The notes beneath the pieces were generated by a model, which saw only the letters and a program-made list of their open reading frames with translations, was not told where the DNA came from and searched no databases. Shown piece after piece: positions 5,870-42,511 of a stretch of DNA of 64,000 bases (position 1 is its first letter; each line of letters begins with the position of its first letter). This DNA is from Zygnema circumcarinatum SAG 698-1b (taxonomy: Eukaryota; Plantae; Zygnematophyceae), in the NCBI GenBank assembly GCA_037447605.1, contig CM074805.1:1893361-1957360 (forward strand), read 5' to 3'. Both the position numbers and the translations under genes were made by a program.

Positions 5870-6252
5870 GTTCGAGAGAGAGAGCAAAGGAGAGAAAGAG
5901 AGTGAGCAGAGGAGTGAAAGCAAAGGAGAGAGAGACTAGAGTAGAGAGCACAGGAGAGAGCAAAGGTGAGAGAAGAGAGAGGGAGCAAAGGAGCGAGAGC
6001 CGAGGGGAGAGAGTATAGAGGAGAGAGAAAGAGCAAAGGAGTGAGAGTAGGGGAGAGAGAGACTAGAGGAGAGAGCAAAGGAGAGAGAGAGAGAGTGAGT
6101 AGAGGAGTGAGAGCAAAGGAGAGAGAGACTAGAGGAGAGAGCACAGGAGAGAGAGACTAGAGGAGAGAGCACAGGAGAGAGCAAAGGAGAGAGAGAGAAT
6201 GAGCAGAGGAGAGAGAGTAGAGGAGAAAAAGACTAGAGGAGAGAGAGCAGAG

Positions 6253-6287
<35 letters not shown>

Positions 6288-6455
6288 CAAAAGAGCGAGA
6301 GCCGAGGAGAGAGAGTATAGAGGAGAGAGCAAAGGAGAGAGAAGAGAGAGAGAGAGCAAAGGAGCGAGAGCCGAGGAGAGAGAGTATAAAGGAGAGAGCA
6401 AAGGAGCGAGAGAGAGTGAGTAGAGGAGTGAGAGCAAAGGAGAGAGAGACTAGAG
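5870..6455 (+). repeat. GA-rich degenerate tandem repeat (GAGAGAGCAAAGGA / GAGACTAGAGGA units) inside the MULE
   Basis: Visible directly; almost entirely purine on the + strand. Confidence 0.9.
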
Positions 6456-6462
6456 GACAACA

Positions 6463-6720
6463 GACAGATTTTACAATCCACGTGTCCTTCTTGGAAAACG
6501 TCGCCCTGATCTCGAAAGGGCAATTTTTCAAGCGGATGGAAGTATTCCTCTTCTTACTACTCTCTTCCAGACCTCTGTCCTCGTAGGTCCCCCCGCTATA
6601 GCATTGTAGGTACAGTCGGCGGCTATCGCTATGCTTGCCGATCTTGATGTGAAATCCTTCCTGCTTGTAGTGCTTAGTCAAGACTTGTACAAGCTCATCG
6701 CGAGTCTTATACTCAGTCAT
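6463..6720 (-). pseudogene. FAR1-type DNA-binding domain fragment of a MULE transposase
   Basis: [44 protein letters not shown]...SIRLKNCPFEIRATFSKKDTWIV fits the FAR1 pattern (Y/F...GF.I...C...CP..I.A....W.V). No DDE domain follows. Confidence 0.7.
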
Positions 6721-6744
6721 TTGTGTGGAGATTGCAAACCGAGA

Positions 6745-7335
6745 GGAAGAAAGGAAGGAGGGGGTGGGCAGGGGAGGGGTGGGCAGGGGAGGGGAGGGAG
6801 GGAAGGGGAGGGGAGGGAGGGGTGGGCAGGGGAGGGAGGGGAGGGGAGGGGAGGGGAGGGAGGGAGGGGTGGGCAGGGGAGGGGAGGGGTGGGCAGGGGA
6901 GGGGAGGGGAGGGAGGGGAGGGGAGGGAGGGGTGGGCAGGGGAGGGGAGGGGAGGGGAGGGAAGGGAGGGAGGGAGGGGTGGGCAGGGGAGGGGAGGGGT
7001 GGGCAGGGGAGGGAGGGGAGGGGAGGGGAGGGGAGGGAGGGGTGGGGAGGGGAGGGGAGGGAGGGGTGGGCAGGGGAGGGGAGGGGAGGGGTGGACAGGG
7101 GAGGGAGGGGAGGGGTGGGCAGGGGAGGGAGGGGTGGAGCAGGGGAGGGAGGGGAGGGGAGGGGAGGGGAGGGAGGGAAGGGAGGGAGGGAGGGGTGGGC
7201 AGGGGAGGGGAGGGAGGGAGGGGAGGGGAGGGGAGGGAGGGGAGGGGAGGGGAGGGGAGGGCAGGGGAGGGGAGGGAAGGGGAGGGGAGGGAGGGGAGGG
7301 CAGGAGGGGAGGGGAGCGGACGGGAGGGGCGGGAA
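6745..7335 (+). repeat. G-run tandem repeat (GGGGA / GGGA / GGGGTGGGCAGGGGA units) inside the MULE
   Basis: Visible directly; dozens of G3-G4 runs with 1-2 nt spacers. Confidence 0.9.
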
Positions 7336-8365
7336 AGAAATATTCAAAAAAGGGGGGCCATCTCCTCCCGAAATATCCAAAATGGGGGAGGGGGGCAGAA
7401 TAGCCGAAATGGGAGGGTCGGATTTCAAAAAAACAGTGGCGGGATAACCAAAAAGGGGGGCGGTATATAGTTCTCCAAAAGTATTAGAGCCAACATTCCC
7501 GTGTTGGTACTTTTGGTGTTCCATTTGTTGATTTTCAAGCATTTGGCTGGATTATCCTGTTTAGAATCTGCTTATGGTGCACCAAAATTGCGTTATGCAG
7601 GCTGCGGCTACGGCCAACCCTAATCGCAGGCAGGCCCGGGCGGGCGCCGGGCGCGCGTCCCGCAGCAACCCTATCTGTAACTGCGGCCACAATCATTGGC
7701 AATTGCTGGTGCGCCTACCAATGGTAACAACCAGCGATTGGCAATGGTTGGCCGCGCACCCCAATCAATGGCGCCAACCAACACTTTTAAGGTGGTCGAA
7801 CCATCCAACCATTGCCAAGAGAGAGGTTGCAACCCGCGGCTCGACCCTCCAATGGTTGTGCCTCAACATGAGCCGTTGAACCATTGACACGACACGAGGC
7901 GTTTCTCAAGCAAAAGTTTGAACACAAAATTGTGGAGACTTAATCGAGTCCCCAACCGTTGAACCGTTGCTAATGGTTAACGACCACTGCATCTGCCAAC
8001 GAATGGTTGCAATCGTTGGTAGCTGGCTGGCTCTGCCAACGAATGGCTGCTGTGGTTGTAAAAACCATTGAATGAATCAACCAACCATTGGGGTTTTCCA
8101 TCGGTTGATCCATCGGTTGGTACCAGGGCACATTCACTTGCAAGATGTGAGTCTGGACCTGCGCTGCACCGCTCCATCCACAGCGCTTCAGCCGCAGAAC
8201 CCCTCTCCTGGAAGCAAGCAAAGTGAAGGGTGCGGCCTTGGAAGCAGCACCCACGACAAGCAGAAACAGGAGGGCGAGTTGGCCCCCCTGCATCAGGAGC
8301 TCGCTTGCTTCGCATTGCAGTAGGAGTAGTGGCATAAGGCTGGGTGTGAGGGTGTGCAGCGGGTG

Positions 8366-15478
<7,113 letters not shown>

Positions 15479-17035: not shown

Positions 17036-17044
17036 AAACCCTAA
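17036..17044. promoter_or_regulatory. Telo-box (AAACCCTAA) in a probable minus-strand 5' leader exon whose donor (GAG|GTATGT) is at 16987/16986
   Basis: Exact motif, next to a GC-rich promoter-like region at ~17300-17650. Confidence 0.45.
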
Positions 17045-25789: not shown

Positions 25790-26420
25790 GTACTAGTGTA
25801 CAGCAACAATGTCCGGTACTGTACTGTACTTGTGTACGGTAATGATGTACGGTAATACAGTCAACCGTCCTCGTATTTACCGCCCTGAGGAGTGCGTCCC
25901 CAAGAATTTCGCCCCGATTTTGCCGAAACCACCTTTTTGTACGGTAACTTAGTGTTACCGTACTGTCCGTATTATCCGTGCTGTCCGTACTAGCCGTACT
26001 AGCTGCACTAGCCGTTACGGCCTTACGCAAAACTCACCTAATCTCCCCGCACGTGCCGCCGTAAGAGGCGCTCGCTCTTCTCCCCTTCTTCTTGGCTTCG
26101 ATACGATACGAAATGATACGGTACGATATGGTACGATACGAAACACCCCGATACGGTACTATCCATACTAGCCGTACGAGATGTAGTAGCCGATACAGCA
26201 CGATACGGTACGATATAGTACGGTACGATACGTACGGTCCAACATGAACTCTAACATAATACCGCCCGTCTATTGGTAACACGAATCTTATATCTTATAT
26301 ATGCAAAATCAATATTTTCGCCTCATATTGGCCAAAACCAGGGTGGAAAATATGAGGACCCCTGACTGTAGTGTACATCAATGATGTACTGTACGGTAAC
26401 AATGTACGGTATGCAATCAT
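25790..26420. repeat. GTAC/GATAC-rich degenerate tandem repeat region, probably a transposon relic
   Basis: Repeats of GATACG, GTACG, CCGTACTAG and TGTACGGTAA. Similar blocks TAGTGTACA(G/T)CAA at ~25794 and ~26369. Confidence 0.6.
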
Positions 26421-28147: not shown

Positions 28148-29242
28148 ATGTTGCGGTTGCTGCCGCAGCTGGAAGGGGGAGATCTGAAGGTGCTCCCTGT
28201 GGTAGCAGGGTATGCGATCTGCTCTTCTCTGCTGTCTATTATTAACAAGTATGCCATCACTGTGTTCGGCTTCCCCTCTCTTCTCACTGCTTTGCAGTAC
28301 CTCACCTGTGTGGTCACTGTATTCCTGCTCGGCCGCCTGAAGCTCCTGGAGCATGAGCCTCTCCGATTTGGAACACTCTACAAGTTTCTCCCTGCAGCTG
28401 GTGTCTTCTACTTGGCCATCTTCACCAATACTTCCCTTCTCAAGTATGCAAATGTCGACACTTTCATTATGGTTCGATCTTCTACGCCCATATTGGTAGC
28501 ATTCGCTGACACCATTTTCAGGAAGCAGCCGCTCCCAAGCCGAGCGACCTTCCTTTCGCTGCTGACGATTTTGCTGGGTGCCATTGGCTACGTGGCGACG
28601 GACAATCAGTTCACGCTGCGAGCCTACTCCTGGGCCTTTGCATATCTCTTCACCATAACCCTGGAAATGGTATACATCAAGCACATCGTCACCAGTTTAG
28701 GGCTTAGCACCTGGGGCTTTGTGCTGTACAACAACTTCATTTCCCTGCTCATCGCTCCTCTATTCTGGCTAGCCAGCGGCGAGTACAAGCTAACCTGGGC
28801 GATTAACTATAATTCTTGGATGGAGCCAAACGTGCTGTTTCCCGTCCTCCTCTCCTGCGCCTTTGGTCTAGCAATCAGCTTTTTTGGCTTCGCATGCCGG
28901 CGGGCTGTTTCAGCCACCTCCTTTACAGTGATTGGAGTCACCAACAAGCTCCTCACGATCATCATCAATACCCTCATTTGGGAGAAGCATGCTTCATTGA
29001 CAGGAATGGGATGTCTTTTGCTGACAATCGTCGGTGGAGTGGCCTATCAGCAAGCAGCATCCAAGAAGCCGCCCAAGCCCAAGATTGTTTCACAGGACGA
29101 GGAAGGGGGGCTGAAGAAACTTGAATCGTCAGATTCAGACGGTACTCCCGATAACTTACCATCTCCAGGGCTCGCATTCTTGTCATTAAAAAAGCAAGAC
29201 AACCGTAAGAGTTCTGCCAACCCGGAGTCGGGTGGCCAGTAG
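28148..29242 (+). CDS. GONST4: Golgi nucleotide-sugar transporter, GDP-fucose transporter GONST4/GFT1-like; intronless, 364 aa
   Basis: GYAICSSLLSIINKYAIT, NVDTFIMVRSSTPILVAFAD, EMVYIKHIV...WGFVLYNN..LLIAPLFWLASGEY, SATSFTVIGVTNKLLT. About 10 transmembrane helices. Confidence 0.88.
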   Translation: MLRLLPQLEGGDLKVLPVVAGYAICSSLLSIINKYAITVFGFPSLLTALQYLTCVVTVFLLGRLKLLEHEPLRFGTLYKFLPAAGVFYLAIFTNTSLLKYANVDTFIMVRSSTPILVAFADTIFRKQPLPSRATFLSLLTILLGAIGYVATDNQFTLRAYSWAFAYLFTITLEMVYIKHIVTSLGLSTWGFVLYNNFISLLIAPLFWLASGEYKLTWAINYNSWMEPNVLFPVLLSCAFGLAISFFGFACRRAVSATSFTVIGVTNKLLTIIINTLIWEKHASLTGMGCLLLTIVGGVAYQQAASKKPPKPKIVSQDEEGGLKKLESSDSDGTPDNLPSPGLAFLSLKKQDNRKSSANPESGGQ

Positions 29243-31681: not shown

Positions 31682-34382
31682 TCATCCCGAGCGGGAGGAA
31701 TTGGCGGAAGGGGCCTTGCTTCCGCCCCAAATGCTGACACCTGTTATTCGTCTTGAAAACTCCTCAAAGAGTGTCCTGTTAATCCCGAGACCACCAGCAT
31801 CACAAACTCCCATTAGGCTTGCTTTAGGATGGAATTGAAGTGGTGCAACACTCCACAGATTAAAGATTGCAGTTTAGGTTCTCGTCATATAATAGCTGCG
31901 GGCTGCTTTGCTGGAGTCCTCTGCTTTAGCTCACGCAATCGGATGATAAGAGGAAAGGGTCCAATTGACGCCCATGGAGACACAAACAGAGAATTGTAGA
32001 GCAGAAGTAATGCACCAGGTAAGAGCTTGGTGAAGAGCTCTTTTTGCTACACGGGGAACAATTCCTCGAAAGAAAGCTCCCATTCCACCAGCCTGCTCAC
32101 TCAAACACACATCGTATTGCATATTGGCGTCTAATTGGAAACGACAGCTTCTGGAGCCTCCTCCAACAGCATAGGTATTTAGCACTATTCGCCTGCATTC
32201 AAAGCTCGCAACGATTCGACTGGACACCTTCTAATGCTATTAAGGACGGCAGCCTGCATACCTGCACTATACGTTGTGTTGCCTTCCACACATTCTGTTG
32301 CCCACCTTCTAGCTGGAGGCTTGTCCGAAGCTGCAAAATGAAGTGGCAGAAAACGCCACGCACAATCCCACAGAAGAATCGTTGCCATAATCAACATTGA
32401 AACCGTCATGACAGTCGGCAGGGGCATAAGCATGAAGAACTAATACACTTTACAACTTTGCAAGGACTTTGAACTTTGGACTCTTTGGACTTTGACTTTG
32501 AAGGACTTTGCAAGGAAGAGAAACCAATCCAGCAAAAGGAAGTAGGCTCATCAATGAACGACGCATGATATATGGCATGAACAGTACATAGACAGAATAA
32601 AGACATTCCTACTGTCCTTCAATGCTCACCACATCAGGGGGATGGGTAATCACTGTTGCTACCGCGCCTGCAGTGCCACCTGTGAAGTCAAACATTACAA
32701 CAAAATTCCTCAGGATTTAAGCAATGTGCGGCTAATCTCAGAGTAGTCTTGGTTTTTTCGATGAACGAAAAAAACTGCCAGCAGGGTTTCTGAAGGAACT
32801 CGGAGATAGAAACGAAAATGAGGGGTTTGGTGCTGACAAGGAGGCAGCACCTGCCTGCCAGAAGGCTGACGAGGCCTTGCTGGGATCCTTCTGGCAACAC
32901 CTTCTCTGCAACAAACGCAGCCCTACTTCCGTCAGAATAACTTTCGTGAAAGGTCGTGAGTGTGATAACTCCTTTAAAATGGTATTGCATTCACCACTTG
33001 TGCCTTTTCTTGCTGTATTGCCGATCTATCATCCTTTTCACCACGGTTTTCCGTTCCTTCTGACTCCATGAACCTAGATGCTGGGTGCTTGATCCATACA
33101 TGCATACATGATCAGTCCTCGCACATTTGGAGAGCTCACCACGGAGAGAGGAGCACAGCCGTGTGTACAAAAGAAGGTAGAGACCTGAGTAGGGTGCATC
33201 CCGGAGCAGTGTAGGGCCCAGACCACTAAAAAGGCCTGCAGAGAAAGCTCAAGAAGGCATAGGAGCTTTAACAAAAAGGTTTGATGGATGTGACGTAACC
33301 ACACAACAGAATTTTAAAGCCCTCACATAGACTAGTACCGTAATATAAATCCCAGCAAGTGAAAACTTCTGCTTCTGGCATTAGGATAACTTGCAGCATT
33401 GTGGCCGATGTCAAATTAACGAGCGAAAAAACATTCCCTTAACAAAAGTATACAGAGCTCGAGTTTTCACCAGAATACAACAAGTTTGAGAAAGTGGAAT
33501 TTAATAAATGGCCTTTGAGTATCTTTAAAACAGTGTGTGCCACTACAAGTAATGATGGTGCAATGTTGGGTTATTATCTGCAAAAGTAAGACAATAATGC
33601 AAGTCGCCATACATAATACACTCCTGCCACAGCCTATGGGTTCAAAATGAAAGCAGTGCAAGAAGGAAGTAACACTTAAACCTTACCGCGGAGCCCTTCC
33701 TTATGGGCAATTACTCGGACTGCTTGGAGAGTGCCTGTGTAAGTCGATCCAGCTACTCCTGCGTACTGCTTGTTTCAACCCAAGTTTTGCCCCACCATGA
33801 ACAGATTAATCAACATCTGAACTGGTCCCCATTTCTATGCTTCAGATAGTCGCTCACATTTTGAAGAATGATCGCCACAAAACAATAGACATTATTCACA
33901 CACTCACACACCTCCATACGAGTTTTCACGACAGTCACAGGGCAGAGCAGGGTCGCTGCAATTGAACGAGTTAGAGCCCCCGCCCCAACAGTGGATGCTG
34001 CGCTGAGCTGCATGTGCTCTCCTCCACCGCCTCCTTCCCTGTTCTGTGCAGTTCGCAGAAGGTCCATAATATGGTCCAAAAGAGCAAAATAAAGCCCTGC
34101 TCCCAGGCCTACACGCACGCATGTTGGACCTGTTCCTCTCCACAATCCTCTCACACCTTCTTGGCGAATAATATCAGCAACAACGCCCTTCACAAGCCTC
34201 GTGCTGCCAACTGGCAGCGCACCAGGGGCCTGCAAATGCGTCCTTACGACGTCCAGCGGTTGCAGAAGGATGCTGCTGGCGATGCCAGACATGGCGCCTG
34301 TAACAAAGGTCAACTTCGTGCGTTTCCCACGTGAAGGTGTCTGCACCTCTTTTGTGCTCTGATGTCCTTCCATGGCTGCCAT
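31682..34382 (-). CDS. Mitochondrial carrier protein, SLC25A38/Hem25-like, 7 exons
   Basis: Three carrier signatures: QPLDVVRT, CPVTVVKTRME and HPPDVV(L)RT. Also GLWRGTGPTCVRVGLGAGLYF, LGPTLLRDAPYSGLY and FFRGIVPRVAKRALHQALTWTLFEE; stop at 31682. Confidence 0.9.
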
Positions 34383-35068
34383 TGGATTCTTATTCTGCGA
34401 GGAACTGGAACTGTAGTCAGGCTTCCTCTCTGGAAGCCCTGTTGATTCTGCCACCAGGAAGAAGTGCTTAGATCTGCAACCGTCCGTTTGTTCACTGTGC
34501 TGCTGCCACAGCACTTTCGCTTCTTGCCCTTAACTCGTCCATCATCACTCTTTATGCTTTTCTGGGTTTTTAGGCTTTAGGGTTCGAATGTTTTGCCGTG
34601 ACCACTCGCCTCCATGCAGCGAAAGCAAGTTGAATCAACTGAAATGGAAGGCCAATAATCGCAAATATGGTACGCTAACTGTTGGCTTTGCACTCGTCAC
34701 GATGTGGCTTGTGGCACTAAGGCCATCCAAAAGAAAGGGAACGAGAGTTGCTGTCATACATGCGCGGCCCTCTCGCAAGCGGAAGAAGCCACAATGCAAT
34801 GCGCTCTTCCTTCGCCTTCAAATGTCTGAGGCCAACCTCAGAGACCTGTGAGATGTAAGATTGCACGGCGAGTTTGAAAAGGCAAAAAGTAGCAAACGCC
34901 ACATTCAGCCAGCAGAAGCCAACCCAGTGGAACAAAACTCTTCTTCACCTCCTCTCTTCTCTCTCCTCCTCCCCTATCCTCTCTCGGATATCCGTACATC
35001 ACCGTACAGCACGGCACTCCTGACGAGGAGCTTTGTCACCGCAGGAGGATTAGGGCTCGCCGACGGCC

Positions 35069-38152: not shown

Positions 38153-38828
38153 CACGTGAAATCCACGTGCAAATCTTGCTGACGTGACGCCCCGCGCTTA
38201 CAAGAGGTGTACGGCATTCTCCGTACAGTCCCGTGTTCCGCACAATAGTAATGCCTGAAAAAAAAGGAAGCAAAAGTTTCCAATGAGCTGCCTTACAGCT
38301 CTTTCTCGAGATCCGATTGGCCCTTGCATCTGCCCGCAAAACATCCCCCTTTCTCGTCTTCACGACTGCATTCCTATTTTCGCGAATATTCCAACAGCGA
38401 ACGGTCACGTCAATCTCCCCTCAAGGGTTGCCCTCGAAAGTAAGCCAATCAAGTTTGCCCACGTAGGCAAATACTTTACGTGGCAAGCTATTACAAAGCC
38501 AGCTCGGACCCAGTCTGCCCAATAAGGCGTCCCCTCGCTCAGATTTCCCGGCCCTCCCGAGCGAATCTTAGGGATTCTGCTCCACGTGGAAATATCTCCT
38601 TCGTGGCAGGCGGGGGGCCGGCCCAATCAGAGCGCCGGCTTTTCGAGATATTTTGGGCGGCACGATATGCCTGTCCGTACCGATGTGGGTCCCACGACCG
38701 CGAGATATTTGCAAGCCTACCGACATTTTCCGCTCTGCCCGTAAGAAAAGCGCGTCGGGCAGGCGCTCCGCCCGGCAGGCCTGAGAATCGGGCGCGGGCC
38801 GAGGGACTGCCACGTGGCGTGGCACGTG
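38153..38828 (+). promoter_or_regulatory. Promoter with three evening elements and five G-boxes
   Basis: AAATATCT 38590-38597; AGATATTTT (full evening element AAAATATCT, reverse) 38646-38654; AGATATTT 38703-38710. CACGTG at 38153, 38164, 38583, 38811 and 38823. Several CCAAT boxes. Confidence 0.75.
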
Positions 38829-38958
38829 CGGTAACGTACGGACGTACGGGACTCTTGGAAGCTGTTTAGGCGGCGCCTCTCCCTGCAGGCCAGCATTCAG
38901 CGGAGGGAGCCATGGCTGCCAGGGGAGGGGCGGCGGCTTGACAGGGAAGAGGGGCAGA

Positions 38959-41630
38959 ATGCAAACCCTAACGAGCGGGTATGGCGGCGGGAGCCTTTCC
39001 CGGAAGGCGGGCGAACATGCGGACGAATCGGAGGATGGTGGTGGAGTGGGGAGTGGGAGAGGCGGCAGTGGTCAGCACGTGATAGGGGCGCATTCCAGCC
39101 GAGGAGAGGTGACAGATGCGCAACAGGTGCGTGCTTTACTTCTCGTTTGCCAGCATCTTTTTCCATTTTTTTTTCATTCTGCCAAGGTCTACGCGCATTG
39201 GGGGCTCGGGCGAGGTAGCGGATGCATGCTTCGTTTAGGGTTTCTTGAAACGATCTATTTCCTGCGTGCGCTTGAGGGCTGGAATGGAGCATGGGCTAGA
39301 AGAGTAATTGTTTTTTGTGTGGCTGGAAGGGAGTGAGAGTGGATGTAGAGAGTGAGGGGGATTATGAGAACATCTCGTACAGTTTTAGGTTTTGAATCTG
39401 CTGGGGGCTGACGGATGAATTGTAGAATGGGTGGATGGTGAAGTGCAGGTTCCCAGCTGGTCCCTTGGAAGCAGGCTCCAGAGCGAGCAGTCATGGGGAG
39501 ATGAGACAGAGCTTGCGGTGGTTCCTGACTACAAAAGCGACAGGCTTTCTCCTGCAGAGAAGAATGCAAAGCGGCAGGTGGATGCGAAATCACAACAAGG
39601 GCATTCCTGGCCGGACGGGTCATCAGAGCACACACATGTGAGTCCATCTCTGAGGGAGGTTGAGAGTCCCGTCTCTGTTCTTCAAACTCGTGAAGAGTAA
39701 AGTTGGGGATGAGTGTTTGCAGGGGTCTCAGGGTGGGGACAGCTCGTTTCGGAATTGGAAGGTGCACAAGTGACCAAGGGCTGGGGCTTTTGCAGGGGGG
39801 AAAGGATGGCGGTGGCAGCAAGAAGGCGCGGGTATGGAAACTGCCCAGCACAATTCCGTGGTGGCCGACGTCAGCGGAAGAATGGGAGAGGCTGGCAGCG
39901 AGGAATGGAGGAGGGGCGTCAGGAGAGGAAGCGTTGCCGCAGGATTTGCTGACCGCCAGTGCGGTGCGGCAGACTATCTTGTCGCAGCAGTCCACTTTCG
40001 GAGAACAGGTGGGGACATCGTACCATGCGAATACTTTTACACCGAAAGTCTGTAAAGAATAGTGCTTATTTTGTTTCCGATTTTCTTTTGTGAGGCTTTG
40101 ACGGGGTCCTTGCTTGTGGGAGGGTTTTCTAATCAGGTGAAGGAGCTGCACCGCGTGTTGGAGCAGCAGAGAACCTTGTCCAGAAGCATGGCCAGTGGAG
40201 GAGATGGTGCTGCTCCGCAGAATTCGACCATGGCTTCCAGGCAAGCCCTTGGCGGAGAGGGGCCTCCTCAGTTAGCCTCTGATTGGAGTCAAGGGGGATG
40301 CTACAACCAGCCAAACGCGCGGATGGACCACTTGTGGCAGGGAAGCAGGGGGGCAGGTGGGCCGCCCCCTAGAAGTGGAGAGGCGTTTTCTTCGGGGAGC
40401 TGGGCGTGGGGACAGCAGCAGCACACGGAAGGAGGGCAGCCCGTTGCCTGCCCCATAGGGCCTCCGCCCCCTCTCCCTATGGCCACTTCTTCGCATTGCG
40501 ATTGGGGACATATGTCTGCCGGACAGTGGATGCAGCACTCGCTGCTGGCCACACAGGGGCCAAGAGGAGTTCCTATGTCTGCCGCAAGCTCGTGGTGGCT
40601 GGCCGGCATGCAGGGAGGCCATATGTCAGGCATAGCTCCCTGGTATGCCCATCAAGCTGCATCTGCTGCATGGGCTCAGGCTCAAGCTCAAGCTCAAGCT
40701 CAAGCTCAGGCTCAGGCTCAATCTCAGGCTCAAGCTCACGCTCAAGCTCAAGCTCAAGCTCAAGCTCAAGCTCAGGCTCAAGCTCACGCTCAAGCTCAAG
40801 CTCAAGCTCAGGTTCAGGCTCAGCATTTAGCGTCTCCTTTCTTTCAACAATGGAGGATGACAGGTGCAAACTCTGGTCCATTCCCTCAGTACGCTGATGG
40901 CGGAGAGTGGGCGGGTGGAACGGCCGCAGAGGCGAATCTTGGGCCCATGCTGTCCTGGCAGGCCCCTGCTGCGCCCATTGTGGCCCCTGCGCGGCCCCCC
41001 TTCAAGAGGCCGCCCCCGCTCGTGCTGGTCCGCGACAGGGATAAGCTCGAGCTCAAGCTGGTCGCCCCTGAACCCTCCACTACGACGGTTCGCAGGCAGA
41101 CAAGCGCAGGGAGCTCCTCGGCAGAGGAGCCTCCGGCAGGTGGACGGAAGGGGCAGGCGCAGTCGCAGGAGAGGGCTGCGAGGGAGGTGTCTAAGCAGGA
41201 GCCCCTTGAGAGGGCTTTCTCGCCGGGTGACGATGCATCAGGTGGTTCAGGAGAGGGGGTGGTCATTGATTCGAGAGAAGAGGGACCCAGATCTGGTGAT
41301 GCAGCAATCCCTCCGGATTCGTCTCAGCAGAGCCCATCACCTGGGGGACATGGGAATGCGACTGGGAGTGGGGGGGGGCACCAAGGAAGAGGCCATGAGG
41401 GAAGCAGGGGAGAGCGGCGACCTGGGGAGTGCACCATCCCGTTGAGGCCTCGACCTCGGAGACCGGAGGCGCGGAGGTTTCAGCAAGAGGAGGGTACGCA
41501 TGATAGGCCGGCTGATAATGCGAGGCACCAGCATTCGAATCTTGGTCATGAGGGAGTGATAACGGGCTGGCGACATGCGGCAGGATCAGCATTTGAGGCT
41601 GGGAGGAGGCCGGAGGGTCAAACAGGATAG
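38959..41630 (+). CDS. Uncharacterised disordered protein with a DUF863/ELF3-like ELHR helix, Gln-Ala repeat and LxLxL EAR motif; proposed exons 38959-39126, 39449-~39637, 39796-40008, 40137-41630
   Basis: The four exons join in phase 0. The junction gives [15 protein letters not shown]|[14 protein letters not shown], and LELKL is at 41046-41060. The start codon and the first two exons are less certain than exons 3-4. Confidence 0.7.
40674..40823 (+). repeat. (GCTCAA/GCTCAG)n coding hexamer repeat, ~25 Ala-Gln dipeptides
   Basis: Visible directly; third-position variation (CAA/CAG, occasional CAC, TCT, GTT) keeps the reading frame. Confidence 0.95.
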
Positions 41631-42511
41631 GACGAGATAGGAGGGCTAACGAGTCACCAAGTAGGAGGTGCAGAAATGTATTCGTTAATTCTGCGCCAAA
41701 TGACACTACGTGAAACTCGGTCTAGTAGGACTTACACACTCCATCTAACTGGCTAACTGATCGCCGTCTCATAGGTGCAAGCAAGCAACCCGGTGCAAGC
41801 AGATCGGGAGTGGAAACAACTGATGAAAACTGACTCTAACCGTGTTGGAAAGCAGTCGTTGATTTTGGAAACAGGGATGAGCTGCCTCCCTCGAAATGCA
41901 GAGGGAAGTCGGCAGTAGCCTTCAGTTCCTCTCTAGAAGGACAGCACTTCCGCCTCTCTATAGGATGGTGGATCCTCATCACCTTGTAACAAAACGTATA
42001 GGGGTCTTCTATAGAGCTCTGATCCTCGAGCATCGCTTTGAGTGGGTATGAATGCGTGTCCTTCATACTTGTGCCATGCTCTGTGAAGCATTATATAGAT
42101 CTAAGAATTTAACTTTTATGGCTTTGTGGATACAGACCAATTTTGGACCACCGTTAAGTATTCTACCCCCTCGTCTCGTAAGATGTTTTTGCTTTCAAAA
42201 TTTCCAATTTGTATTTCTTGATGCAATCGACAAAACCTCTGGTTTGAAGTCTTGGAATTGTGCGTCACCACATTGACATTTACCTTCACCATTACCTTCT
42301 TGGACATGTTGCTCTGTTGGAATAGACTTAATAAATATACCGGCTTCTGCCGAATAAACAGAATAGCAACCGTCGAAGGTTATATTTGATACTAGTTAAC
42401 ATCATCGCAACTGCAATGACCAACTAATCAAGCCATGACAAACTAAACTAAACAAGTCTTCATCTTACAGTCGGGCAGAAAGGCCACTTGACCACTTCAG
42501 AGTGCCGTCCC

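Follow-up and report, generated by a model that had tools for sequence, protein, structure and literature searches.

An ELF3 block II-type helix in an expressed four-exon gene of Zygnema circumcarinatum with an evening-type promoter

Can a protein that has a single conserved block in common with ELF3 be placed beside it, and what might such a protein do? The plant evening complex is built on ELF3 as its scaffold; the origin of ELF3 is unsettled, and its canonical form has been reported from charophytes onward. The question is raised by a gene of Zygnema circumcarinatum SAG 698-1b, on the plus strand at positions 38959-41630 of a stretch of 64,000 nucleotides (GenBank assembly GCA_037447605.1, contig CM074805.1, positions 1,893,361 to 1,957,360), the whole of which is called the window below. 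A first-pass annotation, made from the letters alone, had seen here a candidate novel clock or thermosensory repressor that combined a spliced helix of ELF3 or DUF863 type, an EAR motif and a poly(QA) tract under an evening-element promoter. This is a real, expressed four-exon gene in a zygnematophycean green alga, and the reading we favour, with about even chances of being right, is that its product is an ELF3-like, block-II-only scaffold protein of the Zygnematophyceae, comparable to CETL of Chlamydomonas.

A gene whose helix is divided between two exons

The structure of the gene was read from transcripts. Contigs assembled from this organism's RNA in three public runs, each from a different study, were aligned to positions 38700-42000; they were spliced and skipped 39127-39448, 39638-39795 and 40009-40136, all three of them introns of phase 0 with GT..AG borders. 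The coding sequence comprises 38959-39126, 39449-39637, 39796-40008 and 40137-41627, closes with a stop codon at 41628-41630 and gives a product of 687 amino acids. The join of 40008 to 40137, on which the first-pass annotation had built its helix, is real, since the spliced contigs of all three runs skip 40009-40136, itself GT..AG and of phase 0. The contigs were interrupted at the QA repeat, and that of the third run continued past the 3' end of the gene into the neighbouring region. The parts of the gene are as follows.

38828-38958, plus strand: 5' leader; the contig start at 38828 is the first transcribed base seen
38959-39126, plus strand: coding part of exon 1, 56 amino acids, rich in Gly and Ser (from contigs and translation)
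39449-39637, plus strand: exon 2, 63 amino acids (from contigs and translation)
39796-40008, plus strand: exon 3, 71 amino acids, ending in the upstream half of the block II-like helix
39940-40008, plus strand: first half of the helix, exon 3 residues 49-71 (AlphaFold helix at residues 49-68)
40009-40136, plus strand: intron 3, 128 nucleotides, GT..AG, phase 0, dividing the helix between Q and V; joint present in contigs of three runs
40137-41627, plus strand: coding part of exon 4, 497 residues, opening with the second half of the helix
40137-40193, plus strand: second half of the helix, opening exon 4 (AlphaFold helix at exon 4 residues 2-19, predicted local distance difference test score, pLDDT, 73-85)
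41628-42180, plus strand: stop codon and 3' untranslated region; contigs of two runs stop at about 42035-42180

Two smaller observations belong to the transcript. Contigs of low depth cover intron 1 (39129-39463; depth 4-9 vs 49-78 for the spliced contig) and indicate unspliced or intron-retaining RNA. The 5' leader holds an upstream open reading frame at 38912-38941 (9 codons, MAARGGAAA*), which has a good start context and a reading frame other than that of the main ATG at 38959.

The link to ELF3 lies in the helix that intron 3 divides. Protein analyses were run exon by exon, with the helix halves scored and folded apart, and because both halves were predicted to be helical up to the junction, the models imply one helix of about 40 residues that spans it. 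The reference strings, namely block II of Arabidopsis, maize and tomato ELF3 (AtELF3, ZmELF3 and SlELF3) and Region 1 of CETL, were machine-read from S6 Fig of PMC9612821, the Arabidopsis string being checked by residue numbering. CETL (Cre07.g357500), a dusk-phased protein of clock light input in Chlamydomonas, has only block II, its "Region 1", in common with ELF3 (PMC9612821). From exon 3 the final 16 residues, and from exon 4 the opening 14, were each scored with BLOSUM62 against their half of the reference, and the two scores were summed.

Helix vs AtELF3 block II: summed score 57, identity 11/30
Helix vs ZmELF3 block II: summed score 62, identity 12/30
Helix vs SlELF3 block II: summed score 65, identity 13/30
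Helix vs CETL Region 1: summed score 66, identity 13/30

Composition-matched shuffles of the exon products had best scores of 4-8 ± 5 with a maximum of 39, and none of the 3000 made per reference reached the observed value; a repeat with the ELF3 26-mer of the first-pass annotation and 5000 shuffles had the same outcome, with none reaching the observed score. Because CETL scores 66-67 against the three ELF3s on the same columns, the helix is as good a Region 1 as that of the published CETL. When the block II halves were matched locally, the best positions were the extreme end of exon 3 (equalled by 6 of 300 shuffles) and the extreme start of exon 4 (0 of 300). The core QQ..F..Q..ELH[RK] is therefore present with both halves in register at the exon 3/4 junction, the fuller pattern common to helix and block II being R..I..QQ..F..Q..ELHR....Q, and the gapped alignment to CETL runs further upstream, over AL.DLL...AVR.T. 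The spliced helix of ELF3 block II type that had been claimed for this locus was thus borne out. By these comparisons the similarity is statistically solid and far above composition-matched chance, and we infer that the helix is homologous to block II by descent.

Promoter and conserved blocks

Evening elements are bound by MYB factors of the CCA1/RVE type, and in plants they mark evening-phased genes. The window has three matches to the evening-element core AAATATCT, and all of them lie at 38590-38710, that is, 120-240 nucleotides upstream of the first transcribed base, one of the three being part of a full AAAATATCT at 38646-38654 on the minus strand. Three random sites would fall within <=121 nucleotides with a probability of about 1e-5, and the 3 kilobases upstream hold no evident gene to own the promoter. 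The cluster is accompanied by G-boxes.

38583, 38811 and 38823, no strand assigned: G-boxes (CACGTG) on either side of the evening-element cluster and the transcript start

There are 20 G-boxes in the window vs 10.1 expected, and these three are inside a promoter stretch of about 250 nucleotides. A scan for the LUX site GATWCG showed no enrichment (39 in the window vs 34.6 expected, one of them in the promoter) and was not used as evidence. The evening-element promoter of the earlier annotation was confirmed, and because it has three cores together with G-boxes, the gene is probably evening-expressed and gated by the clock towards dusk.

Beyond the helix, the protein is predicted to be largely disordered (pLDDT <50 for 340 of the 497 exon 4 residues in the AlphaFold model) and is rich in Gly, Ala, Ser, Gln and Trp. 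Its fraction of charged residues (FCR) is 0.185 and its net charge per residue (NCPR) about 0. Pfam, run on each exon product alone, gave nothing relevant. A word-index protein search with exon 4 found one true relative among low-complexity noise, P0001, a product of 383 amino acids from algal transcriptome contigs of the run series SRR8128902-08, which is 47-49% identical over the C-terminal half; with exon 4 residues 1-176 the same kind of search gave no match. No usable match came from an ESM Atlas look-alike search with exon 4, no relative from scans of JGI metagenomes with two alignments, no match from phmmer against the PDB with exon 3 and the first 60 amino acids of exon 4, and none from an Rfam scan of the window. 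The contig that encodes the relative (L001) starts in a CAA/CAT (QH) repeat at its positions 1-48, where its assembly was interrupted. Alignment with this one relative defines the conserved blocks of the C-terminal half.

40500-40661, plus strand: block rich in Trp, Met and Gln, with the invariant columns DW..SAGQWMQ..GPRG..WW..GMQ..HM..WYAHQAA
40992-41072, plus strand: most conserved block, 27 residues, 25 of them identical to the relative; predicted beta-hairpin (strands 295-300 and 303-308) that holds LELKL
41241-41273, plus strand: conserved block of 11 residues
41427-41462, plus strand: conserved basic block of 12 residues with an RPRPRR patch, a candidate nuclear localisation signal
41568-41606, plus strand: conserved C-terminal block of 13 residues

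Further short blocks conserved in the relative are FQQWRM and SAGSSSA.EP. There are 21 Trp residues in the whole protein, 9 of them invariant vs the relative. An Argonaute-hook (GW) reading of this composition was rejected, as there are only 4 WG/GW dipeptides, far too few.

Kinship with ELF3, CETL and DUF863 proteins

The gene is not filed as plain ELF3, because the helix is the only hallmark of ELF3/EEC proteins that was found in it; a Region 1 without blocks I, III and IV is the combination seen in CETL. The protein and CETL each have this helix as their sole link to ELF3, both are long, disordered and furnished with low-complexity tracts rich in Q, and CETL is dusk-phased while the window gene has an evening-type promoter. 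They differ in length (2392 amino acids in CETL vs 687), in a conserved glycine that CETL has and the window protein lacks, and in setting, for the window gene comes from a streptophyte alga, in which group canonical ELF3 homologues have been reported. A further stretch of CETL, Region 2, is described as chlorophyte-specific. The claim of novelty made in the first-pass annotation was accordingly tempered, since a protein with only block II in common with ELF3 had already been published in Chlamydomonas. With ELF3/EEC itself the window protein has the block II core in common (11-13 of 30 columns identical) and also the character of a disordered weak polyampholyte, and its evening-element promoter would suit a gene of the evening complex. 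ELF3/EEC proteins bind ELF4 and LUX and are expressed in the evening phase; of these traits, the promoter with its three evening-element cores and G-boxes is what the window shows. ELF3 genes have four exons, as does the window gene; on the exon position of block II in ELF3 genes nothing was found in the literature.

Several results weigh against placing the protein beside ELF3 and CETL. The first-pass annotation had noted that the other ELF3 blocks were missing, and this was upheld in all exons: best local scores were 27-28 for block I (PRAPPRNKMALYEQ; shuffle mean 28-29), 19-20 for block III (QWL.PVMSP.EGL.YK; shuffle mean about 22), with which FQQWRM has only QW in common, and 23-27 for block IV (RVIKVVPH...AARIF.SIQ.ER; shuffle mean about 24). 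The glycine of Region 1 that is reported to be fully conserved, N-terminal to the helix (G326 in AtELF3, the site of elf3-12), has no equivalent, since the glycine of LLG falls in a 3-residue gap of the CETL alignment, where the window protein has DLLTAS. The C-terminal half is unrelated to ELF3: when a profile of the C-terminal 266 amino acids, beyond the QA tract, was run exhaustively with HMMER against 1.84 billion representatives, it found P0001 alone and no ELF3. Because the searched collection includes Mesotaenium, Spirogloea and Closterium proteomes and these give no match, this half is either confined to a narrow lineage or evolving very fast. Finally, the reference strings were machine-read from a supplementary figure and span 30 columns only, and a helix of such size could be convergent.

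Under convergence of that kind the product would be a disordered protein restricted to its lineage, perhaps a Trp-rich platform for interactions, whose helix came to resemble block II independently. The single relative among so many representatives would fit such a protein, as would the low-confidence model of most of exon 4 and the many Trp residues with their 4 WG/GW dipeptides. We nevertheless consider it improbable: the helix stands more than 10 standard deviations above composition-matched shuffles vs four independent references, its two halves are in register at the junction, and the number of WG/GW dipeptides is far below that of an Argonaute hook.

The opposite possibility is that the gene is the alga's true ELF3 orthologue, strongly diverged, and that zygnematophyte ELF3s retain block II alone with the rest beyond recognition. 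ELF3 homologues are present in the Zygnematophyceae, one each in Mesotaenium, Penium and Spirogloea, and the FCR and NCPR of the window protein put it in the class given for all ELF3/EEC proteins (PMC11523139); the four exons, the block II helix and the evening-type promoter would likewise be expected of an orthologue. Yet orthologues within the class should retain blocks as strong as the conserved C-terminal blocks described above, and the C-terminal profile matches no protein of Mesotaenium, Spirogloea or Closterium; with the Region 1 glycine missing as well, we think orthologous descent unlikely, if less so than convergence.

Membership of the DUF863 family (PF05904), with no role in the clock, was suggested by the helix alone. 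DUF863 proteins have about 1000 amino acids and are known from land plants, and their N-terminal helix carries F..QV.ELHRLY, in a putative consensus given by the first-pass annotation as xxMLxHExxFxxQVxELHRLY. Judged by this consensus, QT.L....F..QV.ELHR would fit the family about as well as ELF3, and the helix of the window protein also lies in the N-terminal third. The exon products, searched one by one, have no match to PF05904 at E <=10, a weak point against the family since the helix was divided between two queries; the papers searched that mention DUF863 offered no link to ELF3, and the evening-element promoter suits ELF3-like regulation. On balance the DUF863 assignment seems to us as poor a prospect as convergence.

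On our favoured reading, that of an ELF3-like, block-II-only scaffold, the window protein would most likely work by analogy with ELF3, as a non-enzymatic disordered scaffold. Its block II-like helix may be the face on which a partner docks; in ELF3 of Arabidopsis the ELF4-binding region adjoins block II (PMC9612821). The Trp-rich block and the short C-terminal blocks, among them the LELKL beta-hairpin and the basic RPRPRR patch, might serve as extra docking motifs or nuclear import signals, and transcription from the evening-element and G-box promoter would gate the protein towards dusk. On this model we infer for it a partner, an evening phase, a clock role and a location in the nucleus. A bolder version can be imagined, in which the F..Q..ELH[RK] helix represents a docking module of ancient origin in green plants and algae that came by descent to ELF3/EEC, CETL, DUF863 and the window protein, and in which the gene encodes a second evening-expressed, ELF4-binding scaffold beside canonical ELF3, with C-terminal effector motifs of its own; to this we give an outside chance, much like that of the diverged orthologue.

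With this gene the Zygnematophyceae, which among algae are sister to the land plants, gain a block-II-only protein under an evening-type promoter. This lends support to the view of the block II helix as an ancient functional core around which the remaining protein is replaceable. The helix offers a short, testable element for the binding of a partner (ELF4) in an alga, and if it should be related to DUF863, it would provide a functional lead for a large uncharacterised plant family.

The LELKL string, the QA tract and the rest of the window

The first-pass annotation had gone further and described an adaptor with an EAR motif for recruiting TOPLESS and a poly(QA) prion-like domain for sensing temperature. 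Its motifs are partly there. At 41046-41060 the string LELKL does occur, behind a run of acidic and basic residues, in the best-conserved block of the protein, and the block as such matters. A conserved LxLxL EAR motif, though, was not shown, because the sole known relative has LELKV, with Val for the third Leu, and because AlphaFold makes the string the second strand of a beta-hairpin. With EAR adaptors such as NINJA and Aux/IAA, a class marked by a conserved LxLxL or DLNxxP motif, the window protein has one LxLxL string in common; it differs from them in the Val of its relative, in the placing of the string inside a predicted hairpin and in having no other feature of either family.

The repeat fared similarly. 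A segment rich in W, G, Q and M does lead into a run of about 25 dipeptides, and the best 60-amino-acid segment has a Q+N content of 42%. A prion-like thermosensor domain of the AtELF3 kind would be conserved, disordered and Q/N-rich over >=60 amino acids.

40674-40822, plus strand: poly(QA) tract, a (GCTCAA)x24.8 microsatellite with 88% matches (Tandem Repeats Finder), about 25 xA dipeptides

The tract does not, however, look like a conserved prion-like domain: it is a microsatellite, the relative lacks it there and carries a QH repeat about 75 residues further upstream, and AlphaFold confidently models it as an alpha-helix (exon 4 residues 167-231, pLDDT 78-94). It is a young, species-specific repeat, probably of variable length. 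The repeat of ELF3 is polyQ, in contrast to the non-conserved poly(QA) of the window protein, and outside Brassicales the prion-like domain of ELF3 is essentially lacking (PMC11523139). Repressor and thermosensor functions are pure conjecture for this protein, and with the relative, the hairpin and the microsatellite all speaking against it, the TOPLESS-recruiting thermosensor is highly improbable, the least likely of the explanations considered here.

The surroundings of the gene agree with its zygnematophycean origin. A single-exon gene for a GONST4-like nucleotide-sugar transporter at 28148-29242 (plus strand) has its best named relatives in three zygnematophytes, Closterium (64-65%), Mesotaenium endlicherianum (66%) and Spirogloea (58%), and its best match overall, at 72%, comes from the run series SRR81289xx, the same series as P0001. 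Other genes seen in the window are one with an NSUN2-type pre-PUA domain at 13860-14591 (plus strand) and one for a mitochondrial carrier at 33810-34514 (minus strand). An open reading frame at 6157-7542 (minus strand) has a weak Pfam match to AFT (WRKY-GCM1-like zinc finger); the region 6001-8000 has a G+C content of 58%, a GC skew of +0.50, an AT skew of +0.36 and long overlapping open reading frames on both strands.

Two kinds of short repeat were noted as well. At 26100-26232, adjoining a G-box at 26050, lies a cluster of degenerate short repeats rich in GATACG and GGTACG, with 7 GATACG on the plus strand; this hexamer is the core of the LUX-binding site, and the array resembles a simple repeat. 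There are 5 copies of the telo-box AAACCCTAA in the window vs 0.45 expected; two of them are inside the gene, at 38963-38971 (codons 2-4) and on the minus strand at 39235-39243 (intron 1), and the others are at 17036, 19007 and 60217.

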